Assembly (NCBI GenBank): GCA_973895155.1
Contig: OZ316899.1
Span: forward strand, 5,459,241 to 5,523,240
Origin: Marsupella aquatica
Lineage: Eukaryota; Plantae; Marchantiophyta
Reading direction: 5' to 3'
DNA length: 64,000 nt
The notes below the pieces were generated by a model, which made no database searches, was not told the DNA's origin, and saw nothing but the letters and a program-made list of their open reading frames with translations. Position 1 is the stretch's first letter. Each line of letters starts with the position of its first letter. A program made the translations under genes and the position numbers. Positions 1,692 through 57,100 of the stretch are shown here, piece by piece.

Positions 1692-4600
1692 ATGTCAAAG
1701 AATTCTATGGAGAAACTCTTATTTCAACCACTCAGCATCGATGGTGCCAACTATTTGTCTTGGACGCTCGATGCTGAAGCTCATCTAACTTCAAAGAATC
1801 TACAGGATACAGTAATAACTTACAATGGCCAAACACTTCAGCAAAAAGCGCAGGCATTGATACTAATTCAACACCATTTGAGTGACTCTATGAAGCGACA
1901 ATACATGAACGAATATAATCCGAGAGTCCTTTGGGACGCACTTCAATCACGCTTCGACCACACACGCACCATACACCTGCCTGCGGCCAGACACGATTGG
2001 ATAAATCTCCGGGTTTAGGACCATAAAACAATCGCGGATTACAATTGTGAATTATTTCGGATTGTATCCCAATTGGCCATATGTGGCCACCCCGTTAATG
2101 ATGATGAACAGATTGAGAAAATGCTCTCTACCCTTCACTCTACAAATCTTATTCTCTCTACCCAATATCGCAATATGCGATTCACACAATATTCCGAGTT
2201 GATTGCCCATATGTTCCTGGCTGAAAAGCACCAGCTATTGCTATTACAGAATTCCCAAAAACGACCCCCTGGAACTCTCCCTCCAGTCACAAATTCAGAA
2301 TCCCACTACGTTACAGCCCAAAGGGGAGAGGGCTCATCTTATCATGGTCGAGGTAGTTTCAGGGGGAGAAACACATACAGAGGCCGAGGTAGCTCTTTCA
2401 AAGGACGCCGAGGCAGAAGCAACAACTTCAGAGGCAGATCCAGGGGAAGATACCAAAACACCGGCGATAACTTCAGAAACAATTGGCAGCAAGGCAACTA
2501 TCAACCCCGAGCGAGGACAAATCAACAGCAAAGCACTCAAAGAGATAAATACGAAAACCCCTCTACCTATTTTCGTTGTGGCACTAAAGGCCACATTCAA
2601 AAATTCTGCCGTACACCTGCACACCTGGTGCAACTATATAAGAAGAGCACTGCACAAAATGAACCTGAGACCTATGGGACTTTCCTAGAATCCACAAAAA
2701 TTATACCAACTATAAACATGGTCATATCAAAGACCACACCTGATTCTAGTATCAAAGAAAAATTTTCCCAATGCATAGTCGACAGTGGTACATCGCATTC
2801 CATTTTAAGCATAAGGAATACTTTAAGCAAATTATACCATCCCAAAGAAAACTTGCAACGATTATGGGCCAGCATCAATTGGAAGAGGGATTTGGACCAG
2901 CATTGGTCACCCTACCCCGTGGGACGATAATTCATGTGGAGTCTGCAATATACGCCCCAAAGGCAACCAGAAACTTACTAAGCTTTGGGGATATCCGTGC
3001 TAACAAACTGCATATTAAGATGGGCACTCAACAAGGACGGGAAGTCTTGTACATCACCTCGGGGGAACCAACAAATACCAAGATCAGAGAGATCGTGAGA
3101 GCATCACCCCCCCGGTTGTTACACTACTGAATTCCACAGCTTCTACACTGGAACACCCCAAGGCACACTTACCGAGATCTGGCACAGGAGACTGGGCCAC
3201 CCTGGAACAACAATGTTCCAGAAACTGATTAGAGAAACCCTGGGCATACCGGAAATGGTCCACCCCACGTCCATGAAAGCTCCTTGTTTAGCTTGCTCAC
3301 AGGGCAAGCTCATAATCCAACCCTCACCACCTACAACTGAGCGCCAAATCCCCCACTTCCTGGAGCGCATACACGCTGACGTATGCGGGCCAATTGACCC
3401 TCCAAGTGGCCCATTCCGATTTTTCCTAGCAGTCATAAACGCATCAACAAAATGGAGTCAGATATCCTTACTATCTACACGAAACCTGGTATTCTCCAGA
3501 CTCCTTGCCCACATACTAAAATTGAGAGTTGAATTCCCTAAAAACCAAATTAAAACACTGAGAGTAGATAACGCTGGCGAATTTACCTCTAGGATGTTTG
3601 AAGATTTTTACCAGGCCACGGGCATTGATGTCCAGTACCCAGTACCCCATGTCCATTTTCAGAATGGAATAGCCGAATCCTTGATTAAACGACTGCAGCT
3701 CATTGCCAGACCCCTACTAATGCAGACAAACTTACCAACAGCTGCTTGGGGTCATGCCATTCTCCACTCTGCTGCACTACTCAATTATAGACCATCATCT
3801 TTTAATTCCTCTACCCCACATCACCTAGCACTGGGGACCATACCAAATGTCTCTCACCTGAGAACGTTTGGCTGTAAAGTAATGGTGCCCATCCTGGGAC
3901 CTAAGAGAACTAAGATGGGACCCCAGAGACACCCAGGAATATACATAGGTTTTGACTCAGCTTCAATCATCGAATATATGGAGCCTACAACATCCGATGT
4001 CTTCAAAGCACGCTTTGCAGATTGCCACTTCTACGAAGATATTTTTCCCAGCCTACATATGAAGCAACTTGACACAGAGAAAACCTCCCAACTTACTTGG
4101 CAAATTGATGTCGGCTTCTGGAACGACCCAAGGGATAGTCATGCGGACACTGAAGTACAACAAATCTTACACCTAGCAAGGATGGCAGAACACCTACCAG
4201 ACTCCTTCGCAGATGCCGCCCAGGTGACACGCTCCCATATCCCAGCAGCAAACGCCCCATCCAGAATACAAATGGAGACCCCACCAGCATCAACAACAGC
4301 CCCGAAAGCAAAGAGAGGCCGCCCACTGGGATCTGTCAACAAGCAACCAAGACAGCGTAGAGCTGCCCCAGCACCTACACCCAGCCCATCAACCAGGGAT
4401 CCAACTACAAGTCAACCAAATGTACCAGAAGACAATGCAGAGATATCAATCAACTATGGAAGAACCGGACATGTATGGGACAGAGAGCACACTACAATAG
4501 ATGAACAATTCGCATTCCACATAGCACAGCAGATCAAAGACAAACTGCCTGACCCTCGAACAATCAAAGAAGCTGAGGTCCAACCTGACTGGCCTGAATG

Positions 4601-6354
4601 GGAACCGGCCATCCATTTAGAACTGGACTCATTAATAGCCCGCCAGGTATTTTGGCCCAATCACAATAGCAGAACCTGAAGTACATCTCACAGGGTATAA
4701 ATGGACCCTCGTAAAGAAAAGAAATGCAAAAGGCGAGGTAACAAGACACAAGGCCAGACTGGTGGCTCGGGGATTCACTCAAGTCCCGGGCAGAGACTAC
4801 GACCTCACATACTCGCCGGTAATGGATGTCATTACCTACAGGTACCTGATTACATTTTCACAACGCCACCACTTATCCATGCATCAAATGGATATTGTGA
4901 TAGCGTATTTATATGGACACTTAGACAAAGTTATATACATGGAGGCCCCTCCAGAATTGGTGAAACGAGTCGAATACCACAGCAAAGGGAAACAAATCGA
5001 TAAAGCAGCAACTCCGAACCAGCCGGAAATATTTGAGCATACCAATTCAGCAATACTCCACAAGACTGCAGCAAAGATAGCCCTTAAAGTCCCTATACAG
5101 AATCAAAGAGACATCACCAGGAGAACTCGATTTGCAGTACAGGTGTTAAGATCACTGTATGGCCTTAAGCAAAGTGGCCTGACATGGTACAAACAATTTA
5201 AGGCCGAGATGCAGGCTATGGGATTTAAGAATGCAGACATAGCACCCTGCTTATTCCTGAAGCGGGAGAACAAGGAATTTATTATAGTAGCCATCTATGT
5301 GGACGATTTGAACCTGTTCGGAACTAAAAAGATTCTGACTGAAACTATTACACTATTGAAAAAGGCCTTCGAGATGCGCGACCTAGACCAGACTTCTTTC
5401 TGCCTAGGCCTGCAATTTGAGCACCTGCACAATGGCATTTTACTACATCAGTCCACATACATCAAAAAGATTCTAAGGCAATTTAACATGGACAAAGCCA
5501 CTGCAGTCAGATCTCCCATGGACATCCGCTCACTTGATAAAGAAAAGGATCTCTTCCGGAAGAAAAGCGAGATGGAGCCACTACTTGGCCCAGAAAAGCC
5601 ATACCTATTTGCTATAGGTGTCCTGATGTTCCTTTCGAACCAGACAAGGCCTGACATAGCCTTCGCAATAAACCTACTGGCATGCCATAGTGCCAAGCCG
5701 ACTATTCGGCATTGGAATGGCATAAAGCGTATTTTCCGCTACCTAGCAGGTACCATAGATCTGGGAGTATTTTACCCATCAGATGCTAAATACTTACTCA
5801 CTGGGTATGCTGATGCAGGTTACCTTTCAGACCCTGAGGATGCAAAGTCTCAGACCGGATACGTTTTCTTGATGGGCGAGATAGCAATTTCATGGCGAAG
5901 TTGCAAGCAAACATTAACTACTACATCATCCAACCACTCCGAGATAATAGCTCTCTACGAATCAAGTAGGGAGTGTATCTGGCTATGCAACGTTATCAAT
6001 CACATTCATGAGAATACAGGCATACCTACACTATCAACACAAATGGAAATTCACAAAGATAACAGAGCATGCGTTGAACAAATTCAAGCAGGCTTTATCA
6101 AGGGAGACAGAACCAAACACATTGCTCCTAAGTTCTTTTTCACGCATGAACAGCAAGGAAGTAGTATTCAAGTTAAATGGATACAAAACTCACAGAACAT
6201 TGCTAACATGTTTACAAAATCCCTACCTCCTGCATTGCATAAACAACATGCAATCTTAGTAGGTCTACGGACCTTAACTGAACTACAAATTAAACACAAT
6301 TATACTTACAGTGGAAATGCTCGTTTTTTGCTCAGGGGGAGACCCAATCTGTAG
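1692..6354 (+). pseudogene. copia gag-pol polyprotein (gag, zinc knuckle remnant, protease, integrase, RT, RNase H) with stop/frameshifts
   Basis: ORFs 1692-2018, 2073-2930 (FRCGTKGHIQKFC; IVDSGT protease), 2771-3130, 3213-4679 (HADVCGP, RVDNAGEF, NGIAE), 4762-6354 (SLYGLKQ, YVDD, YADAGY). Confidence 0.95.
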
Positions 6355-10691: not shown

Positions 10692-11510
10692 GATTGTCAT
10701 TTTTCCTGGTAATAGTAATTTTTTGCTGGTAATAGGAAAATTTTTACTGGTACCAGGAAAACTGTTTCCTGTTTTCTGTCACGGGTGCCATACCCTCCCC
10801 AATCCTCTTTTGTTTGTCCGCAACTTGTTGTAATTTGGTCTTAGCCTCTTCTAGTTCATTTTTTAGCTGATGACATCCCTCGCTTCATCCTTCCACCTTC
10901 CCTTCTCCCCCATCCACTTGGCCCGTTTTACGTCAAAATGGGCCTTAGCAACAATTGCTACCCATGCTTCCTCCTTTAAGGTAGCAATACGCTTGGCAAT
11001 ACATCCACCAATGGTTTGATGACTACCTCATTTTCCTTGGCCAAGGTCACCTATGATTTTGCAACCTGATGCTCTTGTGTATCTTTCAGCTGGTTCATTT
11101 GTTAATATAGATTGGCAACCTTCCCCTTCTCCATTGCCAATAAATCCTTCTGCTTTTTAACCAAATGGTCAACTTTGTTCTTCCAATTGGCCCGGTGCTT
11201 CTTCAACTCCCTAATCTCAGCACCCATGTTATTTATTGCCTCTGACTTGCACCTATTATTGTCCAACCACATCATCAAATCCTCCCAAAGATTTAGAGGT
11301 GTTGGGACCCTCAAATTGACCAGCGTTGCTCTCTTTGTACATAGCTCATCCAAAGCATTTACAACTTTTCTCCATTGGCCTGCTTATCGGCCATCTCCCT
11401 AAGGCTCCTGATAGCTCTAACTTCTTCTTTTGCTCTACATTGTACAGGACCATGAGCCTACTATGCTCTGCCATGCACTTGTACTCTAAGGGAAATCAGC
11501 CTATTCATTA

Positions 11511-11856
11511 AAAGTGTATTATTATTTGATTTATGTACATTTGGGCAATGAAAAGTGTACTTTTGGGCTTGGAAAAGTGTACATTTGGCCAATGAAAAAT
11601 GTACATTTGGGGATAGAAAAATGTACAATTGGCCCAAAGAGTGTACATTTGGGCAATGAAAAGTGTAAATTTGAACATCAAAATAGGTACATTTGGCTTT
11701 AAAAGTGTACATTTGAGTACATTTGGCCTAGAAAGTGTACATTTGAGTGAAAAATGCATACATTTGGCTTAAAAAGTGTACATTTAAGTGCATTTGGTCT
11801 AGAAAGTGTAACTTGTAGTGCAACAAAGTGTACATTTGGCCTAGTGTACATTTGCC
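11511..11856. repeat. Left subterminal array of AAA(G/T)GTACATTT near-palindromes
   Basis: More than a dozen copies of (aaa)gtgtacattt/atgtacattt; three more at 24360-24418 at the right end; probable transposase-binding sites. Confidence 0.85.
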
Positions 11857-12105
11857 TACCAACTCTTCTTATAATCATTTAAAAGAAAGAAATGAATAGA
11901 AAAATATTTTTAATTATGTAGAAAAAGCAAACATTCATATTCATAATGATCAAAAGTTTAGAAAATGAGGAGATAGTATCAAATTAAAACTATTAGAATA
12001 GTAAATAACCAGTACGTAAATTACTATGTTTGAATGAGTGACTATCTTAGTTACATAAAAACTAGTAACTATCTATTTAATTATTATAGCTTCTAACAAC
12101 TAAGT

Positions 12106-15100
12106 CTACTTGTCCATCCTTTGAAGATAATTTTGGACAGTTTGTAGAACATTTTGAGGGATCTTCAAACCTCTGCCCGCCATGTTTTCTTCTTTCATTC
12201 CAGATTTAAAACCATACATTGCAGAATTTGCATACTGCCAATGTTGAGTATTCTCACCAAACCCTGGATCTCGTTCCCATGTCTTAGTGGACATCAAACA
12301 ATTTAGATACCGCGCACTCTCAGTCACATCAAGTTTAGAGTGTTTAGGCCTCCACCATTCAACTGGGAACATTGGAGCGTACTGTCGAGGCAGAGAAGGG
12401 TTTGTTGAAGATGTAGTTGGGACTTCATGCTTTGGGTCCACCAAACCCAAAGCTCTCACCAACCAGAAATGACCTCCACCATTTTTATTCTCCCAATCAT
12501 CCTCGGGTCGAAGAAATACAAAGTTTCCTTCACAAATATCCTGTAAAGGAATCCATCGTCCTTGTTCTCTCTTAGCTCGAGATCCAACAAATGGTGTTGC
12601 TTGATCTTCCATCTCTTCCAAGACCTCATTTTGAAGAGCCGTTATCTCTGCATTCTCCTCATCTTCACTTGGAGGACCACTTTGTTCCGGTTGGTTGACC
12701 TTGTAACCAGTGCCGTGGTTAGTCTTAGGCCAAAATCTGTTTTTCAAGGGAAATTGAGTACTTCCCTCCCCTTCTAGTGCGAGCCCATTTGTCAACAACT
12801 CCACAATTCTCTCCCAATATTTCACAAGAGGAAATCTTTCCTTATATGCTATAGATGTCTCATCAGTGCAACTCCTTCTAAAAAAATCAAGGTACTTGTT
12901 AAGAAATGGGATAATCTCTTCAGATTTTTTGTGTATCTCTCCAATGGATTTAGCTAAGGGCTCTCCACTAGGTAAAAGAAGAGAATTTGTTGTCAGATCT
13001 GTTGCCCAAATGCACCTTCCACCAACTGGAGCCCAAGCTTGCTTTACATGGGACTTATACTGAAATATTGGTACATTATCTCTCATAGAGAAAAGAAATG
13101 ATACAGGTTTTGAGTGACCTTGAATATCTTTCACCTTGAAAGTTTGAAGATATTCTTTGTAAGATGCAACTTCTTGTATCAATCTGGGAACTGGATGAAT
13201 GCTCTCGCATTCCCATACCTCTGCAACTTCTTTGTGCTGAACTTGATATGATACCTTTGAAAAGAGTGCATCAACATCTTCGTGCGTATGACCAACCATT
13301 AGAAAAGACATTTGAACAGTTTCAAATACTCCTCTACTCACAAGCTCGCTACAAAATGCCATGACAATCTGGTTTTTGTTGTCCTTTGCTGAATTATCCA
13401 TCTGCAATGTTAGGTGCCTTGGCAAGGGCTTGAACGATGGACTTCCTTGCTCTCCTTGCATGTCTTCTCCTTCATCCTCATCTTGTTGGTTTGGGACGGT
13501 CTCAGTCCGACTCTCAGCTCCATCTTCAGAACCAATATACCTATTCACCGGATATTCTTGGTTCCAAATAACCCGTCAAAAATGCTTCAAAGTCAAGTAG
13601 GGCTTGAAAGAAAGGTCTGTGACGTTCCCAATGAAGGCCATCCAACATGTCACCTGTCTTGTCTCCATTGTACTCTTCAAGGTCTCGAAGACACTTAGCC
13701 AAGGATGTCACTGTGAAATCGGCATCCTCTGGCCAAAGGCCAGTGACACTAAAGTGTGCATAAACTCCTGGATCCCTCCCGTGGGTCAACATCCCTGTGA
13801 GAGCAATAGGTAGCGGCATTCCATGACCCGAAAGAGATTTAGGAGTACTAACCATTTTTGGAATCCATGTCTTTGCTTGATCCATCTTGTCATGAATAAT
13901 GCAAAGATATTCTCCTGGGTGTTGTTTGGCCATCACTCAATGAGCGTAGTAAACATATCTACGTGACATTTGCTCACAAAGATGTTGCGCTCGCTTTTCT
14001 TCAATTTCAGCACGTTCTTTTTTCCTTCTTTCTCGCATCAAACTGTCTTTGTATTCACAACAAAGAGTACACTTGGCAAATGCACCATCTTTATGAAAAC
14101 TGAAGTTTGCAAATGAGTTGCTCCAGATCTTGTAGAGAGTATTCTCTGTGACAGGAGGAAGCCCTTCTTCCTTTATCTTTGTTCTCACATCTTCCAGAAT
14201 CTCTAGCTTCTTGTAACACGCCGGAAGACGGTACTCAATAGAGTCTTCCCATGTGCCCCTCCATAAGGCATATGAGGCATGGGCTCTGCATTTCGAGTCA
14301 AAAAAGCCTCCAACAGAGCTCGTGCATGCAAGGTATTTGCCCTTGTTTTCATCAAGCCCGTATTGCCATGGAACCCAATTTTGCAACCCTCCACATATCT
14401 CCTTTTGTAATCATAATATTTGGTGTGGCTAAAACCGTGGATAATTGCAAATGCATGTCTGCATACGACCATACCCTTAAGAACATGGTGTCCCTTATCA
14501 CAAACATCATCCTCTCTATAGTGAAAGAGGTTGAAAATGTGTGACGTTTTTGACTCGCTTGACATCCCATGAAATTCCATCCTAATATCTTCGATGTTTT
14601 CCCTTGGCATAATGAGACAACATTTTTGCTTGCAACAATTTTCTCTTTTCACATCATCAATTGACGCCTCTGTTGTTTTTGAAATTGCCTTGGTTTCCAA
14701 CAACCTCCTCTTCTTTTCATTCGGATCTACTTGATTCCTCTTGTTGAAATTGTACGGCCTTGAACGTAGTACTCCTCTATCACTTACATCCGCATTGAGT
14801 TCATCCCTATCCATTGAGTCCATCCTCTCAGAACCTTCCACCAAAATGTCTGACAAAATTTTTCCATTTGCAACTAGTTTTGTTGAATCAATCCGCCATC
14901 GAATCAAACTCACTACTCCCTTGTGGATGTTGGGAAAGTATTGTGCTGCCACGACATCTTTCACAACAATCCCAACATGGTCATCACCAAGAATTTCATC
15001 ATCAACTGCTGCTGTCACTTGAGGGACAGTGATCGTTCCAGTGGCAACCATTTTGGTTCGATCCAAATCAGTGTAGAGTTCAACCAACTCTGACATCCAG

Positions 15101-15861
15101 TTTGCCCGATGAAAATAGTCACACTTAGTGTCCGTGGTGTTCGCCGAACAAGACTGTGAAACAAAATTTGCCTTGTCCTTCTGCTTCTTAGAGGAAGATT
15201 TGTTGCTCCCATCAATATCAACATTCCATACTTTATTGTGGACGTCAACCACATCCCATAGAACCCAAGAGCCCTTTGCCTCTTCAATTGTTGCAGCTCC
15301 ACCATGTGCGTAAGGTAAAGTCTTACTACCATGAATCACATCTGTGACTTTTACACTAACCCGAGACTCACTGAGTAATATGTTATGACATCTCTCCATT
15401 GGATCGGTCTTGAAAACAACTCCAAAGGCCACACAATGGCTAGAGATAAACATTTCAACCTCATCGCCTGGCCTTAGGGTGGTCAAAGCATCCTCCTCTA
15501 CATTTGCAAAAGTATGGATGTTGTTATCTTTTTGAGTCGAACAACTACCAATACTGATGCATTTTTGAGTAATCTTATCCGCAGATCAATATGCACATGA
15601 CATATCCCAAATGACACATGAGTCAATGGCATCATGAAGATTTTCTGCCCTAGGCATTGGAAAAGGGAGCTTCCTAGTCTCACCAAAGGCCTTCTCAATG
15701 AGAACCCCAATTTGATTCTCTCCTAGCACAATATTTTGAACACTCTCTCGCGGATCTGTCTTTTGAACTGTCCCATTTCCAACATCGTAACCATCGATTG
15801 TCAAGGTAACATCATCGCCCCTAGAAAACCTTTGAGACATCCTTTTCCTATTTTCCTGCAC
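12106..15861 (-). pseudogene. Sola-like DDD transposase with N-terminal repeated small domain (TnpA/DUF8039-like, three copies) and Cys-rich region
   Basis: ORFs 15586-15861, 14203-15486 (VAFGVVFKTDP...KGSWVLWD repeats; CCKQKCC, VCRHAF), 13937-14386 (CTLCC...H), 13541-13936 (IIHDKMDQAK), 12106-13548 (QMDNSAKDNKN, GHTHEDVD); frameshifts/stops. Confidence 0.85.
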
Positions 15862-15904
15862 ACTGAAAAAAATGGATTAAATCCAAACTCATGCAAATTT
15901 TGAT

Positions 15905-16710
15905 TCAGACTACTATCCTCCAATTTCGGATTTGGACTAGGACCATCCGAGTCCGGATTTGGACCGGGACCATCCAAGTCTGGATTAGGACTGCAATCCT
16001 CCGAGTCTGGATTTGGACTCCGATCCTCCGATTCTGGATTTGGCCTGGGACCATCAGAGTCCGGATTTGGACCGGGACCATCCAAGTTCGGATTTGGACT
16101 GCAATCCTCCGAGTCTGGATTTGGACTACAATCCTCCGATTCTGGATTTGGACTGGGACCATCCGAGTCCGGATTTGGACCGGGACCATCCAAGTCCGGA
16201 TTTGGACTGCAATCCTTCGAGTCTGAATTTGGACTACGATCCTCCGATTCTGGATTTGGACTGGGACCATCCCAATCCAAACTAGGACTAGGACCATCCC
16301 AATCCAAACTAGGACTTGGACCATCCAAGTCCAAACCTGGACTCTGACCATCCCAATCCAAACTTGGACTTGGACCATCCCAATCCAAACTTGGACTCAG
16401 ACCATCCCAATCCAAACTAGGACTTAGACCATCCAAGTCCAAACTAGGACTCGGACCATCCCAATCCAAAGTTGGACTCGGACCATCCTAATCCAAAGTT
16501 GGACTCGGATGATCCCAATCCAAAGTTGGACTAGGACCATCGTAATCCAAAGTTGGACTCGGACCATCCCAATCCAAACTAGGACTTGGACCATCCAAGT
16601 TCAAACTTGGACTCGTATGACCCCAATCCAAAGTTGGACTCAGATGATCCCAATGCAAACTTGGACTAGGACCATCCGAATCCAAACTTGGACTAGGACC
16701 ATCCTAGACC
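15905..16710. repeat. Tandem array of ~30 27-bp units, each an imperfect palindrome TTGGACTnGGA-CCA-TCCnAnTCCAA; 108-bp higher-order repeat in left half
   Basis: 9-aa periodicity in spurious translations (DWDGPSPSL); direct reading of sequence. Confidence 0.93.
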
Positions 16711-17959
16711 AACCCATGATGTAATGGGAGATAAACTTCAAACATCTTAAGCTAAGAAAAATCCAAATTTAGGAAGACCCCGTATTTTACGGATCTCCCT
16801 AGATATGGTGTAGCCTAAAGTTTGCGTGGTCTTAAGGCAGACCCTAATGTCTACATACAGTTTCATGAAATAATGGAACCTTATATTTGAATGCATTAAC
16901 CTTATACTCACCTTAGTATTAAGATCTGGTAGAAGATGAATATCACATCCAAGGGGTATACATTGTTGTTTGAATAATGGTAAAAACTTCCCAGATTCTT
17001 GAAATACAAGCTATATGCCACTAAATCTTGGGAGTAAAAAACAAACTGAACCCTAAACCACACATGTCTGTAAAAGATAAACTGAGAGGACTCCAAAAGT
17101 CAAGAAGCTGGCTAAGCTGACCCAATGAAGGTAAGTGGCTCAATACATAACACTTTAAGAGAAACTCCCTCCGGATTACATGGAGCTTAGATTTGGGAAA
17201 CTAGAACAAGAATGAGCTCCGAAGTGGGCGTCTCCCAAATTATACCCTTCGCTCGAGTCGGCTCAACCGGAAATCGCGTGAAGATAAGGGTTGAGTACGC
17301 GTTCACCTTAGCTTGCGGACACACCTTATCTTCACGAGCCTAATTGCACGGGGACTACCATGGAAGGCTGTTAGGTAGGCAGGACATCAAGGAAGGAGGC
17401 CGTATGCAAGGTGAGGGCAACGGGCCGTACGCCAGAGCAGGCCGTACGCAGTAGAAGGAGGCAACTGGCCGTACACAGGCCGGGGTGAGGCAGGAGGGGG
17501 TAAAGGGACAGAGAGGTCCAGCCAGGACCTCATTCTCATTCTCTCACTTCTCGCTCTCTCGCTCTCTCGCTCTCCTCCTCACTCTCTCACTCTCCTCTCG
17601 CTCTCCTTGCTCTCTGCTCTCCGCTCTCTCTCCGCTCTCCGTTCTCTCTCTGCGTCCTTGCCTCCGCTTGCCTCCGCCTGCCTCCGCCTGCCTCCGCCTG
17701 CCTCCGCCTTCCACCTTCCACCTCCATTATTTTTTATTGCCCTAGATCGGATGCCTGCTAAGCCGCCACGTGTCATGCTGCCATGTGTTAGAAAGATGGA
17801 AGCGAATCGCGTCCTTGTGATGTCCTATGTGGAAGAAACGGAGGAGTTTGACCTCTCCTCTATGAGCGACAGTGTGGAACTGGCACTCAAAGACTCTAGA
17901 CAATTTCAATCACGAATCCCTAGTAAGTATCCATCACCTATCCTCCCTAAGTCTTAGAG

Positions 17960-18192
17960 GACTGGGACCATTCGAGTCCAAAGTTGGACTCGGACCATCC
18001 CAATCCAAACTTGGACTCGGACCATCCCAATCCAAACTTGGACTCGGATGATTCCAATCTAAAGTTGGACTCGGACCATCCCAATCCAAAGTTGGACTCG
18101 GATGATCCTAATCCATCTAAGAGATTGAATCCCGATTGTAGGAGCAAGTCTAAAACCATCTCAAGTTGGACTAGGACCATCCTAATCCAACA
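17960..18192. repeat. Intronic array of the same 27-bp palindromic unit (~6-8 copies)
   Basis: ttggactcggaccatcccaatccaaa repeated inside predicted intron 17923-18251. Confidence 0.88.
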
Positions 18193-19975
18193 AGAGTTAT
18201 TCGAATGTTTTAAAGGTTTCAAGTCTAACATGGATGACGTTTATGATGCAGGGAGCGATCTTGTTGTTTTCAAACCCGCGATTGCACCGACCCACTGCCT
18301 GGACGGATTCTTACTAGATGAGAGATCCCCACGCTTTTGATGGGGGCTTGAGTTCTCAAGAACCCCGCTTAATAATGAAGTGCCATCAACCATGATTGAA
18401 CTTGTTTTGACCTTAAAGTGCAGAGGAAATGATAGCCTGACTTTTGTTTGCGGACCTGTGGTCTCTGTTGGCATTGGAGGGAGAGGGATGAATACGGTCA
18501 TTCTCGAGATGCACGATAAGTCCTGTTGGGTTAAAGTTAACCTTCTGTCAAAGGCATACTCCTCTGAATTCAATGTCGAATGGCACGCAAGTGGGGAATT
18601 GAGCGTTTTGTCAATGGGATTTTTTCCAAAGACCTATGACACAAAGAAGTTGGTTGCCGGGGTAACTGGTATGCTTCCAGTCGACATTATGTATGGGTTT
18701 CAATATTTGAAACTCAATATGATGAAGCACCAAGGCAATTTTTCTTTTGCAACTACCTGGACGTTAAGCAATTTACTTGAGAAAGCTGGATTGTTATCGT
18801 TGGAGTCGGAGGAGCCTGGTGTTTTAATTGATAAGGATGTTGCATTTGCTCCCAAGTTTGATTTAGTCAAAGCAAAGCAATGGATAGAGTCTTTGTCCAA
18901 GACGAGAAAGTTTCCAGCGGTGAATACAAACCCTATGCCCGAGAAAGCGCCAGAGAAAGCTCCAGAACCTACAACAGAGACCGCAGGAACTACAGCAGCG
19001 ACCTCTCAAAGAGCAGTGGGAAAACAAAAACAAAGCCAAAGGAAACCTCCGGTTGAGAAGAAACTTCCAGTTGAGAAGCCGAGTTGAGAAGCCAGTTGAG
19101 AAGCCAGTTGAGAAGCCGAGTACGAGAAGCCGAGTACGAGAAGCCGAGTTGAGAAGCCAGTTGAGAAGAAACGTCCGGTTGAGAAGCCGAGTGCAAGTGA
19201 AAAGAGACCAAGACAGAAGAAGAAACATAAAATTGACAGTGCCATCATGGATGACACTACAGAAAACCTGACAGTGCATTCACAAGATGTGGACGAGCAG
19301 TTGGATGCTCCTGAGGAGAAGAAGGTCTTAGAAGGTAATGAGGTATTGCAACAAATGGAGCAATATTATACGTTTGGGATCAATTCGATATTTTCTATTC
19401 CTGTAGACAGTAGTTTCCCTGCGTCGGCAAGACTCTATTACAGAATGTTGAATGCATAACATGTAAAGGAGGTGGCCAATTCCATGATAAGAAATCCGGG
19501 GCATGAACCACACATAGCAGACTTGATTCCTTACACTACAAAACATAGAAACCTAATGCAGTATGACAACACAGAATCAGATAGGAGGGACTTTGTAGCA
19601 GCCGTGAAAAAGGGCGAGGTTCAATTCCTTGCCATTAGCGGTCAACATTCGGCTAGAGCAGCCAGATGGATTCGAGAATGGGCAAACAAGGATGCCAAGC
19701 TGACAGCATTGGCAAAAAAGCTGGAATTTTGAAAGTCAAGAATATTATCTCATCGAACACCATCGTCAATATTAGTTGAGCATTCAATGCGATCTAATGC
19801 GATCAATAGCACGATGGTGTTTCAGTCATGCTTCAAAGATATAGTCATTCATGCTAGGCGACAATTTGTGGAATGTGGAAAACCTAGCCGGCCAAAACAT
19901 GGGGACAACAAAACAAACGCTCAAGACAATCAAAAATTTCATGTATGAAGTGTTATTGCTTGATGGGTACAATAC

Positions 19976-20375
19976 CGTAGATTCATGCACATTCAGTAGA
20001 ATATTTCCACTGATATCGCCTAGTTTTGCGTTGGACTGGGATGGTCCCAATCCAAATGGATTCATGCACATTCAGTAGAATCTTTGTCCACTGATATCGT
20101 CTAGTTTTGTGTTGGACTAGGATGGTCCCAGTCCAAATGGATTCATGCACATTCAGTAGAATATTTCCACTGATATTGCCTAGTTTTGCGTTGGACTGGG
20201 ATGGTCCCAGTCCAAATGGATTCATACACATTCAATAGATTATTTTTCCACTGATACTGTCTAGTTTTGTTCTGGACTGGGATGGTCCCAGTCCAAACTA
20301 AATCATGCACATTCAATAGAATATTTCCACTAATATTGTCTAGTTCTGTGTTGGACTGGATGGTCTCAGTCTGCA
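19976..20375. repeat. Intronic ~80-bp tandem repeat (5 units), each holding the 25-bp palindrome
   Basis: Palindromes at 20031, 20112, 20191 (perfect TTGGACTGGGA-TGG-TCCCAGTCCAA), 20272, 20351. Confidence 0.92.
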
Positions 20376-23060
20376 CCTGAGTGCTATCAAACAATTGAGT
20401 TATGGAGAACTAACAGAGTTTCCTTTGCAATTGTAGGATTGGTTGGCTCTTGCAAGAATGACCATGGGAAGGAAAGATTGTCGAAATGTTTACTGGTTAC
20501 TGTTTGCGGACGATGCTCTTTTTGAGTTATGGAGTTTGGTATGCCAGTTGTGGTTGGATGGGAAACTTCCCGATGGAGCTGGGGTAGAAGGAAATGAGAA
20601 GTCTGAAAAAGCAATTACTATTGCCATGTTTTGTTGTTTTGATGGTGAGTTGATCTCACAACGAGACATCACAAGAATACTGACGCGGGTGAAGTCAGGA
20701 AAGGTATTGCTAAAGAAAGATGCCTCTAATAAATCAGACATGCCATCTATAGAGGAGTTGGCCAAAGATGTGAAGATCGTGCGGAAACTGAAGTCCCTTA
20801 TTGAAGACTACTATTGCACCAAGGATGCGGTGAATTTCCCGACAAATACTAATTGGGGGAAAGTAGTGGAGGTTCTTCCTACGCTAGCAATTGATTCAAA
20901 GTTCAGCAGGTGTCGAAGAGCCGCTGGCGAGGTCTATCTTGCCAACCTTTTAAAACCAAATCATACGCGGGATAGCGCAATCTTGCCAACGGCATTGGCA
21001 TTCCGCCTAGATGATATATACTACCAGAAATTTGGCGGAGGTTCATGTTCTCGGACCCTACCATGGGCTACATTTTTTAGCGACAATCTCATGAAGACCA
21101 TTGATCCAGAGTCATTGCAAGAAGCTCCTCCGACCTGCCCTCTTGCCATTGTTGATTTTAGCCGGCTTCCGCAAAAACAATGGACTGAAGCAGAGATTCT
21201 TGTTCTCTTTGAATACATTGTGGAGCTTCCACAAAATCCCACAATTGTTGTGACGATAACAGTTCATCCTCGACAACTTGCATTGAATGTCCATGGTGCC
21301 CTTCGTAAACTGGGACAAGAGAAAGCTTTGACCATTCACATTGAGTATGGGAGTTATTCTCGAGATGATCAATCGCACCCTCATGACTCATGTTGGGGTG
21401 GGGGGATTGAAGAAGTTATCTTTGCGGGGATTTCTCGAGATGAAGACGTCAATTGGAATGAAGTTTTCAAGCCCAACTATCCAAAGCCAAAATTCTTGTA
21501 TACTGCAAAGGATGTTGATTACAAAGTATGCAAGATCGACAAGGGAAAGGGGAAGGCTAAGGAATCAGATGAGGGGACACAAAACGACGACCTAAAAGTG
21601 GTTTTGGACCCGGAAGAGGCCGTCAAGATTATGAATATGGCCCCTCGATTTGAGACAGATGGCAGTCGCAGAGGGTGGGTTAATCCTCATGCCAAACCCA
21701 CGCGGATGATCCGAAGGATTATTGAATCCTTGTCAGAACCGGGAGATTTGGTTCTAGATTTTTTCTCCGGTGGCCAAGTCATGAAGACATCATTTTTTTG
21801 CAATAGGGAATGCTTTGTTTATTGTGACTCTCACTCCGAGAGGCATTTTGTGGAAGCTTTTGCTTCCTACCTTTGCGAGAGAGTTCCCTCACTTAAAGCT
21901 CATTGTGAATCACTTGCTGAAAATTCTCGACAATGGGCTACCATTGTTGCGGCTGTAGCTGTCGCTGTTGAATCCGATGGCTCTGAGTCTGAAGATGTTG
22001 CTGACAAAGTGGCTGAAGGCGTAGAGGCATCAAAGGAGGCATATGTCAAGAATTTGGATGACCGTGTTGGTCAAGGTGAGCCTTACGATGTAGATGATGA
22101 TATTGGACTTGCACCAAACTGTTCATCTGGTTTAGATGACATCCCTCCGGGGCCCAATGAAGTTCAAGTTGATGATAACTTGGACAAGGATGATCCCAAT
22201 CCAACAACGCCGAGAGGACAGATGGAGCAACTGGAAGGAGCAAGGGTTGATACGTTTGATCATCTTTCTTCAACCAATCTGATCAATGAAGGCGCAACGA
22301 GGCTCGAAGATTCAAATGAAGCTGAAACTAAAGAATTGACTCGGGGGGAGACCGAGGGGGAGACTGGCGGATTGCCTGACATTCCAATCAATCCAGGAGG
22401 AAATACATCAACGGCTGCTGACAACCAGGCAGGTGCTTCAACTTGTCCTGACACACTCTTTTCAGCTTCTGATGACAAATTGGTGTTCGTTCGTTCACAC
22501 TCGGGGAGTCCTATTGTCCTTCCGCTCTCAAAAAAGAAAGGAAATAGAGTTGGATCAACTGGATGGAGGTCATTGGAATGCGATGCACGATGTTACGTGT
22601 GGAAAAGTGGGCCAAATCGAGGCCAAGAAATATCATTGGATGCTGCTCCTTCAATTCTCAATAAGGAGGAGTATAAGAGTGGAGAATTGGGGTTGATAAC
22701 TCCTGTTTGGACTTCACCTTATTGGGTAGAACAAAGTACTTCAGATGTCAATTTTGAAATCCAACAGGAGCTTGGTGCTGACATGATTATTGATGAATAC
22801 GGATCTCTTATTTCGGAATGAAATTCAGCCTTTGACTTTGTATTTATTCATATCAATCTAAAATACTTCTCGGTCTCACAGAATGCACTCACTAATTAAA
22901 GTCTCCATATCCGTCTACACATTGTGAGGCTTCTAAAAACGGTATGTAGGTTAATTTTATTTGTTGTCAGCCATTGTCTTGTATTTTTGGACTGAGACAA
23001 TCCTAATCCAAAGTTCACTTTTGGTCTTTTCTCTGAGAATGGTGTTTGGTGCACTTGCAG

Positions 23061-24094
23061 AATCGAGACCTGGTCCCCTCAAGCGGAAGTTGCTGATTTT
23101 GGACCTTAATAAAATACTTTGGGATTCTATTGAATTCCAAAGCAAGGGCACATCCAGGAATATTGTCACCTCAAGTGGAGTGCATTGGGATAGATCAAAT
23201 GGAACTAGTCGCATGTATACAGAGAGGCCAGGGCTCCATGAGTTTCTAAAGTTGGTTTTTGACCGGTTTGACGTTGCAATTTGGACATGTGCTGGGATGC
23301 GCGAACAGTGAAAATGTTGAACATGATGTTCACAATTGAGGAGCGGTTGAAACTGAAGTTTGTATTCACACAAGTGGAAGCCTTTGACACAGGCATTCAA
23401 AGGCGTGACATTACAAATGGAAAGGCAAATGTGCTATTGAAGGATTTTCGGGTGGTATGGAGTGCATTTGGAAATCTATATGATGAAACCAACACATTCC
23501 TTGTGGATGACTCCCCCTTGAAGGCATTTGCCAACCCAGACATGACCGGACTATTTCCAGTTCCCTACACGCATGCCAATCGTGGAGACAATTTTCTTCT
23601 AACAATTCTTTGGCCATGTCTTGAGAAACTATCCCATGCAAGTGACATTTGTTGTTATCTTCTCCTAAACTCTCCAAAGTGGTCTCTATTGCACATTAAG
23701 AGAGACAAGGCAAAAAATGAGATTACTTATGATCAACTTAGTAAGAGATGTGCAACAAAAATTTGGAAGTCATAGTATAGGCATAGTGTGCTGGACCTCA
23801 ATAGCAATGAGATTCCTTGGGCTGTGAAGCACCGTATGTAGCTTACGTCCTGAGGTGGAACTTGACGATGCACTTGTCACCTCACTTGCTAGATCATTTG
23901 TAGGACGGGAATATTCAGGTTTGTATAGAGAAAATCCTAGACACTTTTTGCGGGAGATTATAGCAGTTAGGAACAACACCACCAAATTTCATCTCCCTGA
24001 AGATAAAGGGACTTGCAACCGTGACATTAGGGTAGATAGTAAAGGAGACAAAGGCACGTGCTCAAATAAATATTGTAAGGAGCACTTTGTTTAG
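23061..24094 (+). pseudogene. FCP1/NIF-family HAD phosphatase-like protein (Sola cargo)
   Basis: KRKLLILDLNKIL, RPGLHEFL, VAIWTCA, LLKDFRVVW, NTFLVDDSPLKAFANP across ORFs 22961-23311 and 23281-23775 (frameshift); tail 23855-24094. Confidence 0.8.
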
Positions 24095-25000
24095 AGATCT
24101 GACTCATGTTAAGCCCATTAGATAGTAAAAATGGGTGCCAGCCCTGGATATTCATTGTAAGTTTGGACACAATTGTATATAATTATTTTCACACATTATC
24201 AATCAATGGTCCTTGCCTGGGCTTCTTTGTGCGGAAATGTTTTTACAAGTATGATCTCTATCCCATGGTTCTTTGTGAACTAATAAGTAATATAATACTA
24301 TTATAATTAATATATTATATTATATTATATTAATATAATACTAATAAGATTTGGCCTATAAAGTGTACATTTAGGGTATCAAAAAGTGTACATTTGGGCT
24401 TCGTAAAGTGTACATTTGGGGACATAAAAGACATTTCAGGACTGATTTGTGAACAAAAGAAAATACACTTTTAATGAATAGGCTGATGGAACCAACTCCA
24501 ATTCTTGTGGGATGATTTCAAGTAAGGTTTTACCAACAATATTTGCAACATGCCTGACTAAGTCCATAGTGTATTCTGATGCTGGTTCCTCATACCAAAC
24601 CAGTGGGTGCTGTCTTTTCTCATGGACCCTTTGTTGTAATGGTCTAGGTTGGGGAGATACGCCCAACCCACTTGTTTGTCTTTCATAATCTCATCGGACC
24701 AAGGCCCTCCAGGTAGGTATTTTTCTTCCTCAACATTGGGTCCTATTACTGGATTATGCCTTTGTTCCCAAGAATGCCTTTAAAACTTTGATCAATTGAC
24801 TCCTCCAAAAGTTGGATGTTATGGCATTTGGGGGTGACAAGGGTGATTCTTGATATACCATGTTACTCCTTTTGGGCAAGTTGCCCAATTATGTATCCTG
24901 GCAATTGCGTGCTTGGCTTGAGGCCCATTTGGTCAGCCTGATATCCATCATACTTATCAATCCCCAAAGCCACCAACTCTCCTCCAGCAAATTGTGTGTT

Positions 25001-25326
25001 GGGTATGGCACCCGTGATAGAAAACAGAAATAGGAAACAGGTTTCCTGGTACCAGTAAAAAATTTCCTGTTTCGAACAAAAAATTACTGTTACCAGGAAA
25101 AATGACAATCAAAAAATATTTTCAAAAAAGTCACATTTTCCAAAAACAATTTAAAAAAAATAAATTTGGCTAGCTTTGGGCGCTGGCTAAAAAAACTAAA
25201 AATTCAGAACAAAAAAAAAATTCAAAAAAAATTACCACTCCTTTTCCTGTTAACAGTTTCTATTTCCTGTTACCAGTTTATGTTTGCTGTTACTGTTTGT
25301 TGTTTGCTTTCGTTTGTAAATACCTC
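25001..25326 (+). mobile_element. MULE-family MITE
   Basis: Left end GGGTATGGCACCCGTG like the autonomous MULE ends; right end ...TAAATACCTC; perfect 8-bp TSD TGTGTGTT (24993-25000, 25327-25334); degenerate palindrome at 25171-25185. Confidence 0.85.
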
Positions 25327-53011: not shown

Positions 53012-54115
53012 GCATTGCAAGACATTTGCTACAAAACTAATGTAGGACAAGTCCATAGAGTTATGTTTGACAGAACGTTGTTTCAATTATTCAAACATAG
53101 TTTTGTCCATCTTCCTCGTCATTTCCAACGTACGCACACATACATCGTTTCTACAGATGTAACTTACGTTTTTGACTGACCCGTAAGTTTTTTACGTCGT
53201 CTAGCACATGGTTACCATATATATACGTTGTATATTACAATGTAAAATGAAGCAGGCAACGTTACTAACATCAATAAGAAACTTTACGTTGTATGGTATA
53301 TTGTATGAATGAATTAACGTCATGAGAGACAAGGTAAAATTTTATTTCCTTGGAATGGTAACCATTATTTTTATAAAAAGAACAGTTCCCCCGTGAAAAG
53401 CCCCACGGGGGGTATGATAGCCATGACAGAAAACAGAAAACCTGTTACCAGGGGTTTATTTTCTGTTAACAGGGAAATTGTACCTATTACCAGTAAGCTT
53501 GTCCCTGTTACCAGTTTTGCCTGAACCATAACGTGCATATCCACCACTCTAAGGTGCATATCCACCACTCTAATGGCATAATTTTTCGGGGGGCAATAAA
53601 GTTTAAAACAAACAATTATTTTGTGCCATCCGATGGATGAAGTGTACTATCAATCCTCCATTGACACAACAATTTATTGTAGAAGATAAAAAACATGGTA
53701 TTAGGAGTGTGCCTAAAGAAACATTCATGCAAATCAATCTATTTTCATCGCCAAATAGTGACCCTTAGAGTGGGACCCACCATAGCACATGTCAATCGTG
53801 GAGTCCAAATCAACCCAATCTAAAGGAGTTGATTAAATGGACCTTGTAACGTCACAAACAAATGACAAATCACATCCTTGAGGCTTTGAAGACAGTAGAC
53901 AATTTAATCAACTTACACATTTTAAATAAAACAAGAGGTCATTCTTCCACAATGCACGTACATAATGAAGCAATGAATATCCAGTTTCCTAGAACCAGCG
54001 CCCGGCGCTAACCAACAAAGTCTCAATAAAACAACTAAAATATCCGTTGGAAAAAGACAAAATAGGGAATAACCGTTATATTGAACGATGACCTATTGGG
54101 CAGTTTCGATCTCTC

Positions 54116-57100
54116 TCATAAGCCATTCAAGTTCTGCCTCTCCAGCACAAGCCTGACTTCGCCTAAAGTCAAAATAGGTTGGCTACAAAGAGTCGACTCC
54201 TCAATCTCAAGTTTGAAAACATTTATGTACACCCAGTATAGATGTTTGCAAGGCATGTACGACTTGCCACACGAATGTCGGAGGAAGAAGTCTTCACAAG
54301 AGCAAGCGGGGAAGATACAGATTTGGACGAAGTATGTGCTTGGTGATCGATGGTTCTCATGGGTTCGAATTCGAAATTGCTTTCCAAAAGCATTTCCGGT
54401 CTGAACATTCCATTCCCCATCCAAACTCATCACTTCTTGTCGTGCAGACTCCATTCGCTTCGTGTGACCCACAGTGAGATTAGACCGAGGCCTTGAGTTC
54501 CTCCCATTCCGACTACCAAGTCGGAGATTCGGCTCCAAAAACCTTATTGTTTCTGGGAACACGTTAACATTTATCCTGAGGTCAAAAGCAGATGGCACAG
54601 ATCGACTCAATCCTGTTGTTCGCGCTAAGACAAGTCCTTGCTCTTCCAGGAATGTAATTTCAGAAGGAGACAGGCTCGTACCCTTCAGAACAGGCAAAAT
54701 GTCAGGAAAAGGAGGAAGCTTCTGAACACCACGACGCGGATGACTCTTGTAACACGCTTGGTTCGGGCAAAACCAAATCATTTCGGAGATGGGTTCGCCC
54801 CTGAAGAGACGATGGCCCTTCACGACAATTCCGACAACACCTTCAGACGAATGGAAGCCAACCTTCTTGATACGATTTCGACACTCATCGCGATCCGAAC
54901 TCCCATTCAGTGTACCATTGCATTGCGGACCTGCTCCATACTTCGATGTCCGTCGCAACTGCCACTGCCCCGGAGGGACATCCTTCTCTAGCACAATCGT
55001 GCGTGGAAGTTGATTCTGAAGTGCTGCTGGGGCATTGAGCGGAGGTTTTGAGGATCTTGTTGTTCGGGTTGTTTGAGGAGTATAGTCCAGTGAATCAGTA
55101 TCACTCTCTGATGTGACCATACCTGAGAGATTCACCGCCTTTGTGACAGGATGATCAGAACTTGAGGGAATAGAAGAAAAGTCAGTTCTGTTCAGGTTCT
55201 TCCTTTTCAAACCACGAGTATTTGGTGTGGTTATTAGAACGGTGTCATGCCGATGGGAATCTTGTGGAGAGACAGTCCCAGTTGCATGTCCCTTCCTCTT
55301 CATTGACTTCGTCATTATATCTCCATTCAGGGGAGTACTTCTTTCCAAATCGAATTCTGCTGCGTTAGATAGAAGCATATTAGTCACTTCTTCAAACAAT
55401 CTTGGCAAACCTGCTTGATCGGCGGAACGGAACGCCAATTCCCATATAGTTGGCCCCTTCCCCCGGTTCAAGCCTTTACGGTATGCACTGTATCCGGCAA
55501 CTTGAGACAGAGCACGGTTTTGATCAACTTTGCAAGCTTCATAAAGACCGACCTTTTTCTTTGTAGCCGAGGCTTTCATGGACGCATGCCTTGATTCTGA
55601 CCCTGTACAGTTGGGGATCAAGGCACCTTCCTCAGCGCTTTTGCTCTGCCATACGAAAATGTCAACCGTAAGTAGTATTCTATTACCAGCGCCCGGCGCT
55701 GGCAACATAAATATGTAGAACAGGCCTGAAATACAATTTCAATGTTTAATACTGAATTCTAACTACATATTGGCTTCAATTTCTTGTACTACTTGTTTTG
55801 ACGTGTATGGAGAAAATAACCAGCGCCTGGCGCTAATATGAAGTTGATGAACATTACAGTCTAGATAGATGGATGCCTTACCACTCGAATAAAATTGCCC
55901 CACTGGCGCCAACGAACAACCCACCAAGATATCCAGCTTTGCAGCATCTTCAGCTTTCCGGGGACACAGTTTCCTGATTGCCACCACACAACAATCTCTC
56001 GGGACACCCGGTATGCTGCCACAAATGATGGAGCATTTCTCAGCTTCTCCCAAAGTCTCCGATGCTCCGATTGACATTCTTCCAGTACTCCTTCCTTGGA
56101 ATGACGATGAAAAGATTGATAAAAGTGAAATGCATTAGAGCGCTCCCTCTCCGGGTCCGGGTGTCCACCAAAAAAAACATTTCGCATTGCATTCCATCCA
56201 ACTTGTGCATTGTCGGCCATAAATCCTTGGATGACAACCTCCTGAAGTTCATTTTCTTTGCAAACCTCAATCATCACTCTCCATGCCTTTTCAAAAGACT
56301 CAGTGTCTTCACCTTTCAACTCGCATGTGAAAATTGTACACAGTGCACGGAAATTGTGGTCGTAGACGTGTGCGCTGAAAGTAAACCAATCCGTGGTGAC
56401 ACGCTGCATCACATCGAAACTTACCCAGGCTCCTTCGAGTCTTCCACCCAGTTGCATTTGCCTCAAAAGATCCACACCGGAACCGTGACCTTTCACGGTC
56501 ATTTTAAAGATGTGAGGCCTATCGTTCTGACATCCCTGACCTGGAAGCAAATACCTCTGGAGAAACGACACATGAATCCTCCTCTGCATTTGCGAGAGAA
56601 AATCTAATTCACCCTGACCTTTTTGGTCTATCCTAACGCTCCGACAAAGAGATGCAAACTTCTACGGAGTGGAAAGGACCATCAGAGACTTCCATATTTC
56701 AGTTTCTTCGATATCGACCATGTCGTCAACATGTTCGCAGAGAGATTTCACTAAGGACCCTGTAGCAGAATTCAAGATCCCTGCCGGTTTTGACAGAGGA
56801 TTGGCTTCATGTTTTTTTTTAATTAGATCCTCAGCTATCTTCTCCGCACTCCTACATAAGGTTTTTCTACCTGGATGGTTGTGCTCACCTATATGAATTG
56901 CTAGGCGGGACATATGACCACATGTTTCCGCATCAAGTAATACTTGGGGGTACATGTAAAACAAACGGGCAGGGCAGTACTTCACACAAAAAGGAATCTG
57001 TTCGCAGTAATGACAAACAACACCTCCCTCTTCGATGAAAGATCCCACAGCATACTGACCACTGAGCTTTGGAGTACCCTGCCATGCCTTAGCATTTGCC

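Follow-up and report, generated by a model that had tools for sequence, protein, structure and literature searches.

A relic Sola1 transposon of the liverwort Marsupella aquatica carries a gene for a predicted ParB/Srx-fold protein with a degenerate methyltransferase fold

The closest described counterparts of the gene analyzed here come from algae. The Ectocarpus transposon Sola1-1_Ec32 encodes a 1104-amino acid (aa) protein composed of a ParB-like domain and a methyltransferase of the N4-methylcytosine/N6-methyladenine (4mC/6mA) type, and its gene is located on the strand opposite the transposase (PMC12477816, Genome Biol 2025). The authors proposed that such proteins form an accessory class that binds and modifies its own element (PMC12477816). 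In Plavaka elements of Bostrychia, the accessory genes PAG2 and PAG3 provide one protein that combines a PF01555 domain with a SET domain and another that combines a ParB domain with a 2-oxoglutarate (2OG) oxygenase domain, and homologues occur in Chondrus Plavaka and Mutator elements (bioRxiv 10.1101/2025.02.11.637652). A gene of this kind is also present in the liverwort Marsupella aquatica. It lies in a 64,000-nucleotide (nt) stretch of DNA, hereafter the window (GenBank assembly GCA_973895155.1, contig OZ316899.1, positions 5,459,241 to 5,523,240 of the forward strand), as cargo of a decayed Sola1-superfamily transposon at window positions 11495-24487. The favored reading, at a rough probability of 55%, is that the cargo protein would be a sequence-specific DNA-binding factor acting on palindromes of its own element, with a methyltransferase fold that would serve as a binder. 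The same self-binding idea was proposed for the algal elements (PMC12477816; bioRxiv 10.1101/2025.02.11.637652).

How does the liverwort gene compare with these systems? The likeness to Sola1-1_Ec32, judged from the published description and the domain layout, comprises the Sola1 transposase, the 4-bp duplication, and an opposite-strand gene in which a ParB-like domain is followed by a PF01555-type domain. The Ectocarpus element differs in its brown-alga host, its length of 21.5 kb, and its 282-bp terminal repeats. Its methyltransferase is described as predicted active, and neither a phosphatase partner nor palindrome arrays are reported there. Bostrychia Plavaka provides a second likeness in that giant DNA transposons encode ParB-like and PF01555 domains for which self-binding was proposed, and tandem inverted-repeat arrays adjoin the ParB-like gene. 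However, the two domains reside in separate Bostrychia proteins, the superfamily is KDZ/Plavaka, and the ParB domain there is a weak HHpred match (E 0.29). The arrangement has algal precedents and is not new as a kind; the window gene is a land-plant variant of it. The features of the liverwort version are the loss of the catalytic motif, a constant FCP1-like partner, and family-specific palindrome arrays in fixed places.

Three further systems share single traits with the window gene. Phage and prophage fusions of PF02195 and PF01555 match it in the order of both the domains and the beta-class motifs, and a phage cluster with ParB_N and PF01555 is a structural neighbor of the methyltransferase region of the family. 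The phage proteins are prokaryotic, carry a canonical DPPY/DPPF motif and a ParB_N domain recognizable by Pfam, and are without introns, the extra N- and C-terminal domains, and the palindrome arrays of a eukaryotic transposon. Bacterial ParB, Noc, and KorB share the N-terminal ParB/Srx fold (Z 8-9) and the clusters of short palindromes near the gene, whereas the liverwort family has SGQHS in place of GERR and no ParA partner. In Marchantia, another liverwort, MpDN4MT1a/b also contains a beta-class amino-methyltransferase domain of prokaryotic type. In contrast to the window gene, it belongs to the host, keeps the TSPPY motif intact, has proven 4mC activity, and is expressed in sperm (bioRxiv 10.1101/2021.02.12.428880), and no ParB-like domain or transposon context has been reported for it.

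The cargo gene and the palindrome arrays are arranged as follows in window coordinates.

15928-16712: palindrome array with a 27-bp period, GGACTGGGA-N3-TCCCAGTCC, in the divergent intergenic region
17959-18115: palindrome array no. 2, also GGACTGGGA-N3-TCCCAGTCC, directly upstream of the cargo gene
18230-19942, plus strand: cargo exon 1, with an N-terminal domain, a K/E/P-rich linker, and a predicted ParB/Srx-fold domain (from homologue alignments and an AlphaFold model)
19943-20437, plus strand: cargo intron, GT..AG, with a palindrome array of 81-bp period (from P0002, P0029, P0160, and the intron-less P0158)
20438-22821, plus strand: cargo exon 2, an open frame of 792 codons (from the open reading frame, PF01555, and homologues)

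A single reading frame aligns with homologues over ~18281-19942 and then over 20438-22821. The exons and the pieces between stop codons were searched singly, and the uninterrupted P0158/L004 stood for the full-length protein. The gene models P0002, P0029, and P0160 of Calypogeia fissa cross the exon junction (..KFQ|DW..), and the homologue P0158 (L004:271-3300, a European Nucleotide Archive (ENA) contig) carries both parts in one unbroken 1009-aa open reading frame (ORF). Because the C. fissa models span the junction and the P0158 ORF is uninterrupted, homology indicates that 18230-19942 and 20438-22821 are one gene encoding one protein. The first-pass annotation, which was made from the letters alone, had staked its reading on the segments 19250-19940 and 20438-22821 belonging together, and at the level of the family they do. 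Its gene start at 17751 has no support, as similarity with the relatives begins at ~18281 and the probable start codon is the ATG at 18230. The protein would be ~1,300 aa long and consist of an N-terminal domain, a basic linker, the ParB/Srx domain, the methyltransferase fold, and a C-terminal domain. Exon 2 accounts for a helical region, the degenerate beta-class amino-methyltransferase fold, and the conserved C-terminal domain. The latter (~130 aa, ~22417-22818) is conserved in all full-length relatives with the pattern ..DKLVF..GSP.VL....G..G.TGW.....YVW..GP.KG..S...A......P......VEQ....N..LQ..LG....DEYGS, and the window segment 22417-22818 matches no known family.

The ParB-like domain occupies about 19340-19940. 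The strings YRMLN..HVKEVANSM and ISGQHS, from which it had been proposed, are present in the window: YRMLNA*HVKEVANSM at ~19440-19490 and ISGQHSARAA from 19634, with ISGQHS itself at 19634-19651. Evidence for the fold comes from an AlphaFold model built on an alignment (A6) of 38 rows, which was obtained by adding 28 relatives, has the homologue L004:451-1047 as its first row, and includes the window pieces. The model of this homologue had a predicted local distance difference test (pLDDT) score of 89.2 and a predicted template modelling (pTM) score of 0.82. In a Foldseek search with the model, the first 40-odd rows were nearly all ParB/Srx-fold proteins. The best match was Noc (E 1.1e-3, probability 1.00), and the top rows included ParB of Caulobacter, Myxococcus, and Bacillus, KorB, PadC, SbnI, Atu1540, and the plant and human sulfiredoxins. 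VIA-align gave the same picture: 32 of the 32 best rows belonged to the ParB/Srx superfamily, ParB of M. xanthus aligned at Z 9.0 with a root-mean-square deviation (rmsd) of 2.5 Å over 95 residues, and ParB, Noc, and KorB aligned at Z 7-9 with rmsd 2.4-3.6 over 91-100 residues. When 48,161 representative chains were scanned exhaustively, the top 13 were all members of the ParB/Srx superfamily (Z 7.5 to 2.4), and unrelated chains appeared from Z 2.3 down. The first-pass annotation had made this fold decisive for its claim, and the pLDDT 89 model with ParB, Noc, and KorB on top confirms the ISGQHS region as a predicted ParB/Srx fold. The GERRxRA arginine box is not found; at the strand-helix junction, the family reads (A/V)(I/V)SGQHSAxA, and SGQHS is equated with the GERR position by motif order, not by a residue-level structural alignment.

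A separate comparison in the ESM Atlas placed eukaryotic protein clusters nearest, by features, to the ParB-like region of L002 (L002:1907-2476). The top cluster (score 0.95) was fungal with PF12520 (DUF3723) in 31% of its members, and mollusc and sponge clusters were next. DUF3723 is an accessory gene of the fungal Starship giant transposons, and its product may be another transposon-borne ParB/Srx-like protein. In metagenome contigs, a search with the ParB-like alignment gave 93 pattern matches, of which none was confirmed.

The second half of the protein has a methyltransferase fold but lacks the motif by which such enzymes act. The string NPHAKPTRMIRRIIESLSEPGDLVLDFFSGG at 21682-21774, which ends in DFFSGG (21757-21774), corresponds to motifs X-I and matches positions 163-191 of PF01555 (N6_N4_Mtase) with E 1.5e-6 and 28.7 bits, the gathering cut-off being 26.7 bits. 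Relatives score 15-26 bits over positions 92-210. In hhalign, the family profile matched the true methyltransferase P0145 with a probability of 93% and E 2.4e-7 over 42 residues covering motifs X-I, and this alignment stops short of motifs IV-VIII. The profile also matched M.RsrI (E 6e-4). S-adenosylmethionine (AdoMet) motifs X and I are kept as NPHAKP...VLDFFSGG. The fold was compared through a family member, P0010, which stood for the window protein. The ESM Atlas model of its residues 195-490 matched ten clusters, all PF01555, with template modelling (TM) scores of 0.57-0.63 over spans of 205-230 residues, and one of the clusters was phage ParB_N + PF01555. These matches argue that the whole beta-class N4/N6 amino-methyltransferase fold is present. 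The catalytic motif (D/N/S)PP(Y/F/W), however, is absent from the window ORF and from every family member searched (~190 sequences). Where motif IV is expected, ~200 residues ahead of motif I and following a hydrophobic strand, the family has VDFSR, DLTH, or DLVR; the window reads CPLAIVDFSR, with DFSR at 21154-21165, and all relatives examined read D-F/L-S/T/G-R/H. Because the usual catalytic loop is missing, the methyltransferase fold is most likely a pseudo-enzyme or binder, not a DNA methylase. Both folds of the annotated gene stand, and "MTase" is better taken as the name of a fold than of an enzyme.

The palindromes are the proposed targets of the protein. The sequence GGACTGGGA-N3-TCCCAGTCC has 33 matches in the window against 0.05 expected, all of them within the element, and they occupy the divergent intergenic region, the region directly upstream of the cargo gene, and the intron, where four or five copies repeat with the 81-bp period. 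The corresponding locus of C. fissa has 26 copies of another palindrome, GCCTCGAGA-N3-TCTCGAGGC, in corresponding places, namely upstream of, in the intron of, and downstream of the cargo gene. The window palindrome was not found in the C. fissa locus, nor the C. fissa palindrome in the window locus. L002 and the Riccia locus L005 each have their own further palindrome type. In contrast to the palindromes, the subterminal 22-bp repeats of the element are alike between the window and C. fissa. The palindrome type thus differs where the cargo has diverged (37% identity), although the transposase (63%) is similar and so are the subterminal repeats, and the palindromes would fit cognate sites of a fast-evolving cargo protein rather than of the transposase.

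The setting of the gene is conserved among relatives. A search of 1.84 billion representative sequences gave 214 matching clusters. The named relatives of the window cargo gene are Calypogeia fissa, Riccia sorocarpa, and one fern fragment; apart from the fern, all are liverworts. The fern fragment, P0126 of Ceratopteris richardii, aligns with the first part of exon 2 (profile positions 54-202). Another hit, P0136 of Haliotis rufescens, consists of one short stretch matched ten times over and probably reflects a repeat artefact. Locus L001 of C. fissa shares the layout of the window, with a minus-strand Sola1 transposase, an intron-bearing cargo gene, and a NIF/FCP1-like gene. Identity between the window and C. 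fissa is 63% in the transposase core, 57% in the ParB-like part, and 37% in cargo exon 2. A NIF-like gene (PF03031) follows the cargo gene at 13735-14610 in L001, 3258-4154 in L003, 3572-4510 in L004, and 15201-15911 in the distant Riccia L005. Its DxDxT site reads LDLNK in the window and D-L/C/V-N/E-x across loci with the second Asp lost, so the partner may be a pseudo-phosphatase. In the database models P0074, P0127, and P0143, the NIF-like gene is fused to the methyltransferase-like ORF. The position of the cargo gene, its intron, its NIF-like partner, and its long ORFs are kept across Calypogeia and Riccia despite cargo identities of 20-45%, and because of this the cargo gene is unlikely to be a passive one-off capture. 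The annotation's view that the gene was not passively captured is supported by this synteny and by the long ORFs in the two genera.

What would the cargo protein do? One model is that it binds the palindrome arrays of the element as ParB loads on parS arrays. The bound protein would then mark or organize the chromatin or transcription of the element to the element's benefit, and the phosphatase-like partner possibly acts together with it. A bolder form of the model, held only tentatively and more doubtful than not, sees a self-recognition module of land-plant Sola1 elements, in which the ParB/Srx and pseudo-methyltransferase protein would load on co-evolving, family-specific arrays and, with a CTD-phosphatase-like partner, set up a chromatin or transcription state autonomous to the element. 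The co-evolution of palindromes and protein would in that case resemble that of ParB and parS across plasmid incompatibility groups, and the dead methyltransferase fold would be a reader of DNA or AdoMet.

Several results weigh against the binding model. ParB is absent from the results of sequence profile searches (Pfam, NCBIfam, and PDB profiles); PF02195 (ParB_N) had no match at E up to 10 in five members, and NCBIfam likewise had none. A first AlphaFold model from a shallow alignment of 9 sequences (pLDDT 63) found no clear match in Foldseek and VIA-align, although ParB, KorB, and Noc already held Foldseek ranks 2, 3, 14, 21, and 31, and it is not counted as evidence against the fold. The later fold model is that of a homologue ~35-45% identical to the window pieces and not of the broken window copy. 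Canonical behavior of a cytidine triphosphate (CTP)-dependent ParB is unlikely because the box is SGQHS instead of GERR. DFSR was placed at motif IV because of its position, the hydrophobic strand before it, and an Atlas match that begins ahead of it, and not through a residue-level structural alignment. The palindromes could also be sites for the transposase, or simply satellite DNA. Among public runs, the window stretch was found in no RNA run, and copies evidently went on spreading or persisting even when their cargo gene was broken.

The alternative that survives best, although it is unlikely, is that the ParB/Srx domain is a nuclease or nucleoside triphosphatase (NTPase) of the ParB-like nuclease, DndB, or GmrSD groups that works in transposition or DNA processing and does not bind arrays, which would instead be satellites, sites for the transposase, or elements of a promoter or insulator. 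The structural neighbors do include SbnI, the serine kinase SerK, SspE, BrxU, and a DndB complex, SGQHS is nearer to the DndB/DUF262 motifs DGQHR/DGQQR than to the GERR of ParB, and the arrays occupy the divergent promoter region. However, the best structural matches are the N-domains of true ParB, Noc, and KorB (Z 8-9). Moreover, between the window and C. fissa the arrays vary together with the cargo (37%) against a similar transposase (63%) and similar subterminal repeats, and these separate repeats already resemble transposase sites.

Less probable again is an active N6-adenine/N4-cytosine methyltransferase with an unorthodox active site, which the ParB-like domain would target to the element so that methylation marks self or blunts host silencing. 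An enzyme is suggested by the good conservation of AdoMet motifs X-I in all members, by the invariant Asp at the first position of motif IV, and by the phage ParB_N + PF01555 fusions, which are the closest architecture. The Ectocarpus Sola1 protein was called a predicted 4mC/6mA methyltransferase (PMC12477816), and liverworts use 4mC through MpDN4MT1, which has TSPPY (bioRxiv 10.1101/2021.02.12.428880). Yet (D/N/S)PP(Y/F/W) occurs in 0 of the ~190 sequences searched, variable F/L, S/T/G, and R/H stand where the two prolines and the aromatic residue that hold the flipped base would be, and profile likeness to real enzymes is restricted to motifs X-I. Least probable is a passive cargo, that is, a captured host gene or a horizontally acquired one under neutral decay with no role for the element: the six exon 1 stops, private differences without codon-position bias, and the stop in the C. 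fissa copy L001 would suit it, but gene order, intron position, and partner persist at 20-45% identity in two liverwort classes, several elements have intact ORFs of 770-1009 aa, 214 representative clusters match, and an analogous gene exists in the Ectocarpus Sola1 element (PMC12477816).

The remaining features of the element are its ends, its transposase gene, and the third gene.

11491-11494: left target site duplication GGAA (direct reading)
11495-11528: left terminal inverted repeat, beginning ATCAGCCTATTCATTAAAAGTG (inverted-repeat pair, 34 nt, 91% complementary)
11534-11858: left subterminal 22-bp repeats, beginning TGTACATTTGGGCA (the unit is also in the C. fissa element)
12106-15861, minus strand: Sola1-type DDD transposase gene, frame-broken (PF25273, E 8.6e-34)
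22961-24085, plus strand: third gene, FCP1/NIF-like phosphatase homologue, frame-broken (PF03031, E 5e-7 and 9.7e-6)
24358-24428: right subterminal 22-bp repeats (repeat search)
24454-24487: right terminal inverted repeat, paired with 11495-11528
24488-24491: right target site duplication GGAA (direct reading)

The stretch 11495-24487 is a DNA transposon bounded by 34-nt terminal inverted repeats that are 91% complementary, and GGAA read directly outside both ends is its 4-bp target site duplication. These limits agree with those of the first-pass annotation, as do the Sola-like transposase with GHTHEDVD and the head-to-head layout of a plus-strand cargo gene opposite a minus-strand transposase. 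The subterminal 22-bp repeats are likely candidates for transposase-binding sites. The transposase (12106-15861, minus strand) matches PF25273/DUF7869 in Pfam with E 8.6e-34, holds MVGHTHEDVD, and has frame breaks near 13548-13556 and 14248-14281. Against two C. fissa transposase ORFs, its identities are 63% and 44% by tblastn, which spans frame changes, and 63% and 48% by blastp. When the supplement of PMC12477816 was read by eye, and not through a computed alignment, three blocks of the window transposase lined up with that of Sola1-1_Ec32, the blocks that bear the catalytic Asp residues among them. In block 1, Ectocarpus CMMDGANQ corresponds to window CIIHDKMDQ. In block 2, VQVDNTVAENKNN corresponds to LQMDNSAKDNKNQ, with the core VQVDNT..ENKNN against LQMDNS..DNKNQ. 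In block 3, FMMVGHTHIQIDQIFS corresponds to FLMVGHTHEDVDALFS, or in shorter form FMMVGHTHIQID to FLMVGHTHEDVD. The curated Ectocarpus Sola-1 and Sola-2 entries give a target duplication of 4 (PMC12477816). Because of the matching transposase blocks and the 4-bp target duplication, the window element is assigned by sequence to Sola1. As a cut-and-paste transposon of the Sola1 superfamily, the element has decayed into a non-autonomous copy. Its two-gene accessory cassette is conserved, and both genes point away from the transposase gene.

Two observations concern the transposase itself. Its N-terminus (window 14203-15861, minus strand; L001 3762-5267) contains 2-3 repeats of a ~60-aa unit, GDEV.MF...G.V.KTDP......L.E.RV.V.....LPY. 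A C. fissa transposase ORF has a weak match to PF03017 of the TNP1/En/Spm family (E 0.003).

The cargo gene of the window copy is broken. Exon 1 contains six in-frame stops, at 18338, 19085, 19097, 19109, 19457, and 19730. The stops reported earlier at ~19457 and ~19730 are both present; the count of two was too low. Other copies, represented by contigs from four public runs, have CGA at 18338 and GAC at 19457, therefore these two stops are private to the window copy. A 12-bp repeat in the linker, AGTTGAGAAGCC, with 7.8 copies at 19069-19168, gives three in-frame stops (19085-19111), and read in a different frame it encodes VEKP repeats. Insertions of 1 nt at 19084 and 19093 occur in some of the contigs from other copies. 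The C. fissa L001 copy (position 9917) has TGA at the same codon as window 19730, in TTT TGA AAG TCA AG., and ~20 relatives have Arg at this codon (..F/Y-R-K-A/S-R-I-L..). Programmed read-through or a conserved stop at 19730 was considered and rejected on the Arg of the ~20 relatives and on the T that precedes the codon. The simpler reading of the shared TGA would be that CGA decayed to TGA at a CpG independently in the two copies. CGA to TGA changes at 19730 and 18338 would fit deamination of methylated CpG in silenced transposons. The window copy is a relic, with stops in exon 1 and frame breaks in the transposase and third gene, and it cannot make the cargo protein.

A second element of the window, at 53410-63030, had been described as a Mutator-like element (MULE) with a version of the same gene. 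The MULE label is putative because the supposed transposase ORFs (54116-57822, minus strand) have no Pfam match at E <=0.01. Its plus-strand ORFs at 59661-61004 and 61198-62454 match PF01555 below threshold at motifs X-I (E 3.6e-4), and a BLAST search linked them to one true methyltransferase. Nothing significant was found between the Sola-borne and MULE-borne proteins by BLASTP or hhalign, and in the comparison set, consisting of the best 150 of 214 matches plus proteins from two word searches, a single bona fide methyltransferase was all that matched the MULE protein. The putative ParB-like part in the MULE gene corresponds to a single 26-residue match. The two versions had been said not to align beyond motifs, and the likeness does stop at methyltransferase motifs X-I; the accompanying idea that they are one shared module finds no significant link in BLASTP or hhalign. 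As there is no demonstrable homology between the Sola-borne and MULE-borne genes beyond motifs X-I, exchange and independent recruitment are not separable here.

Around the element, the window is eukaryotic repeat-rich DNA with a Copia-type reverse transcriptase (RT) and integrase at 3213-6354. An outer inverted-repeat pair at 10692-10795 and 25001-25110 (83 nt at 90% plus 30 nt at 93%) sits ~700 and ~540 bp beyond the ends of the Sola element. The Sola copy was probably inserted into another short terminal-repeat element.

Little is understood about the accessory genes that eukaryotic DNA transposons carry. One practical consequence concerns annotation, as ORFs of this family in Riccia are labelled as the host genes "DNA methylase", "FCP1 homology", and "Nucleolar protein 6". 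The pairs of protein and palindrome provide concrete material for binding tests. The presence of ParB and methyltransferase proteins in algal Sola1, Plavaka, and Mutator elements and in liverworts suggests that self-recognition or self-management by transposons may be widespread.

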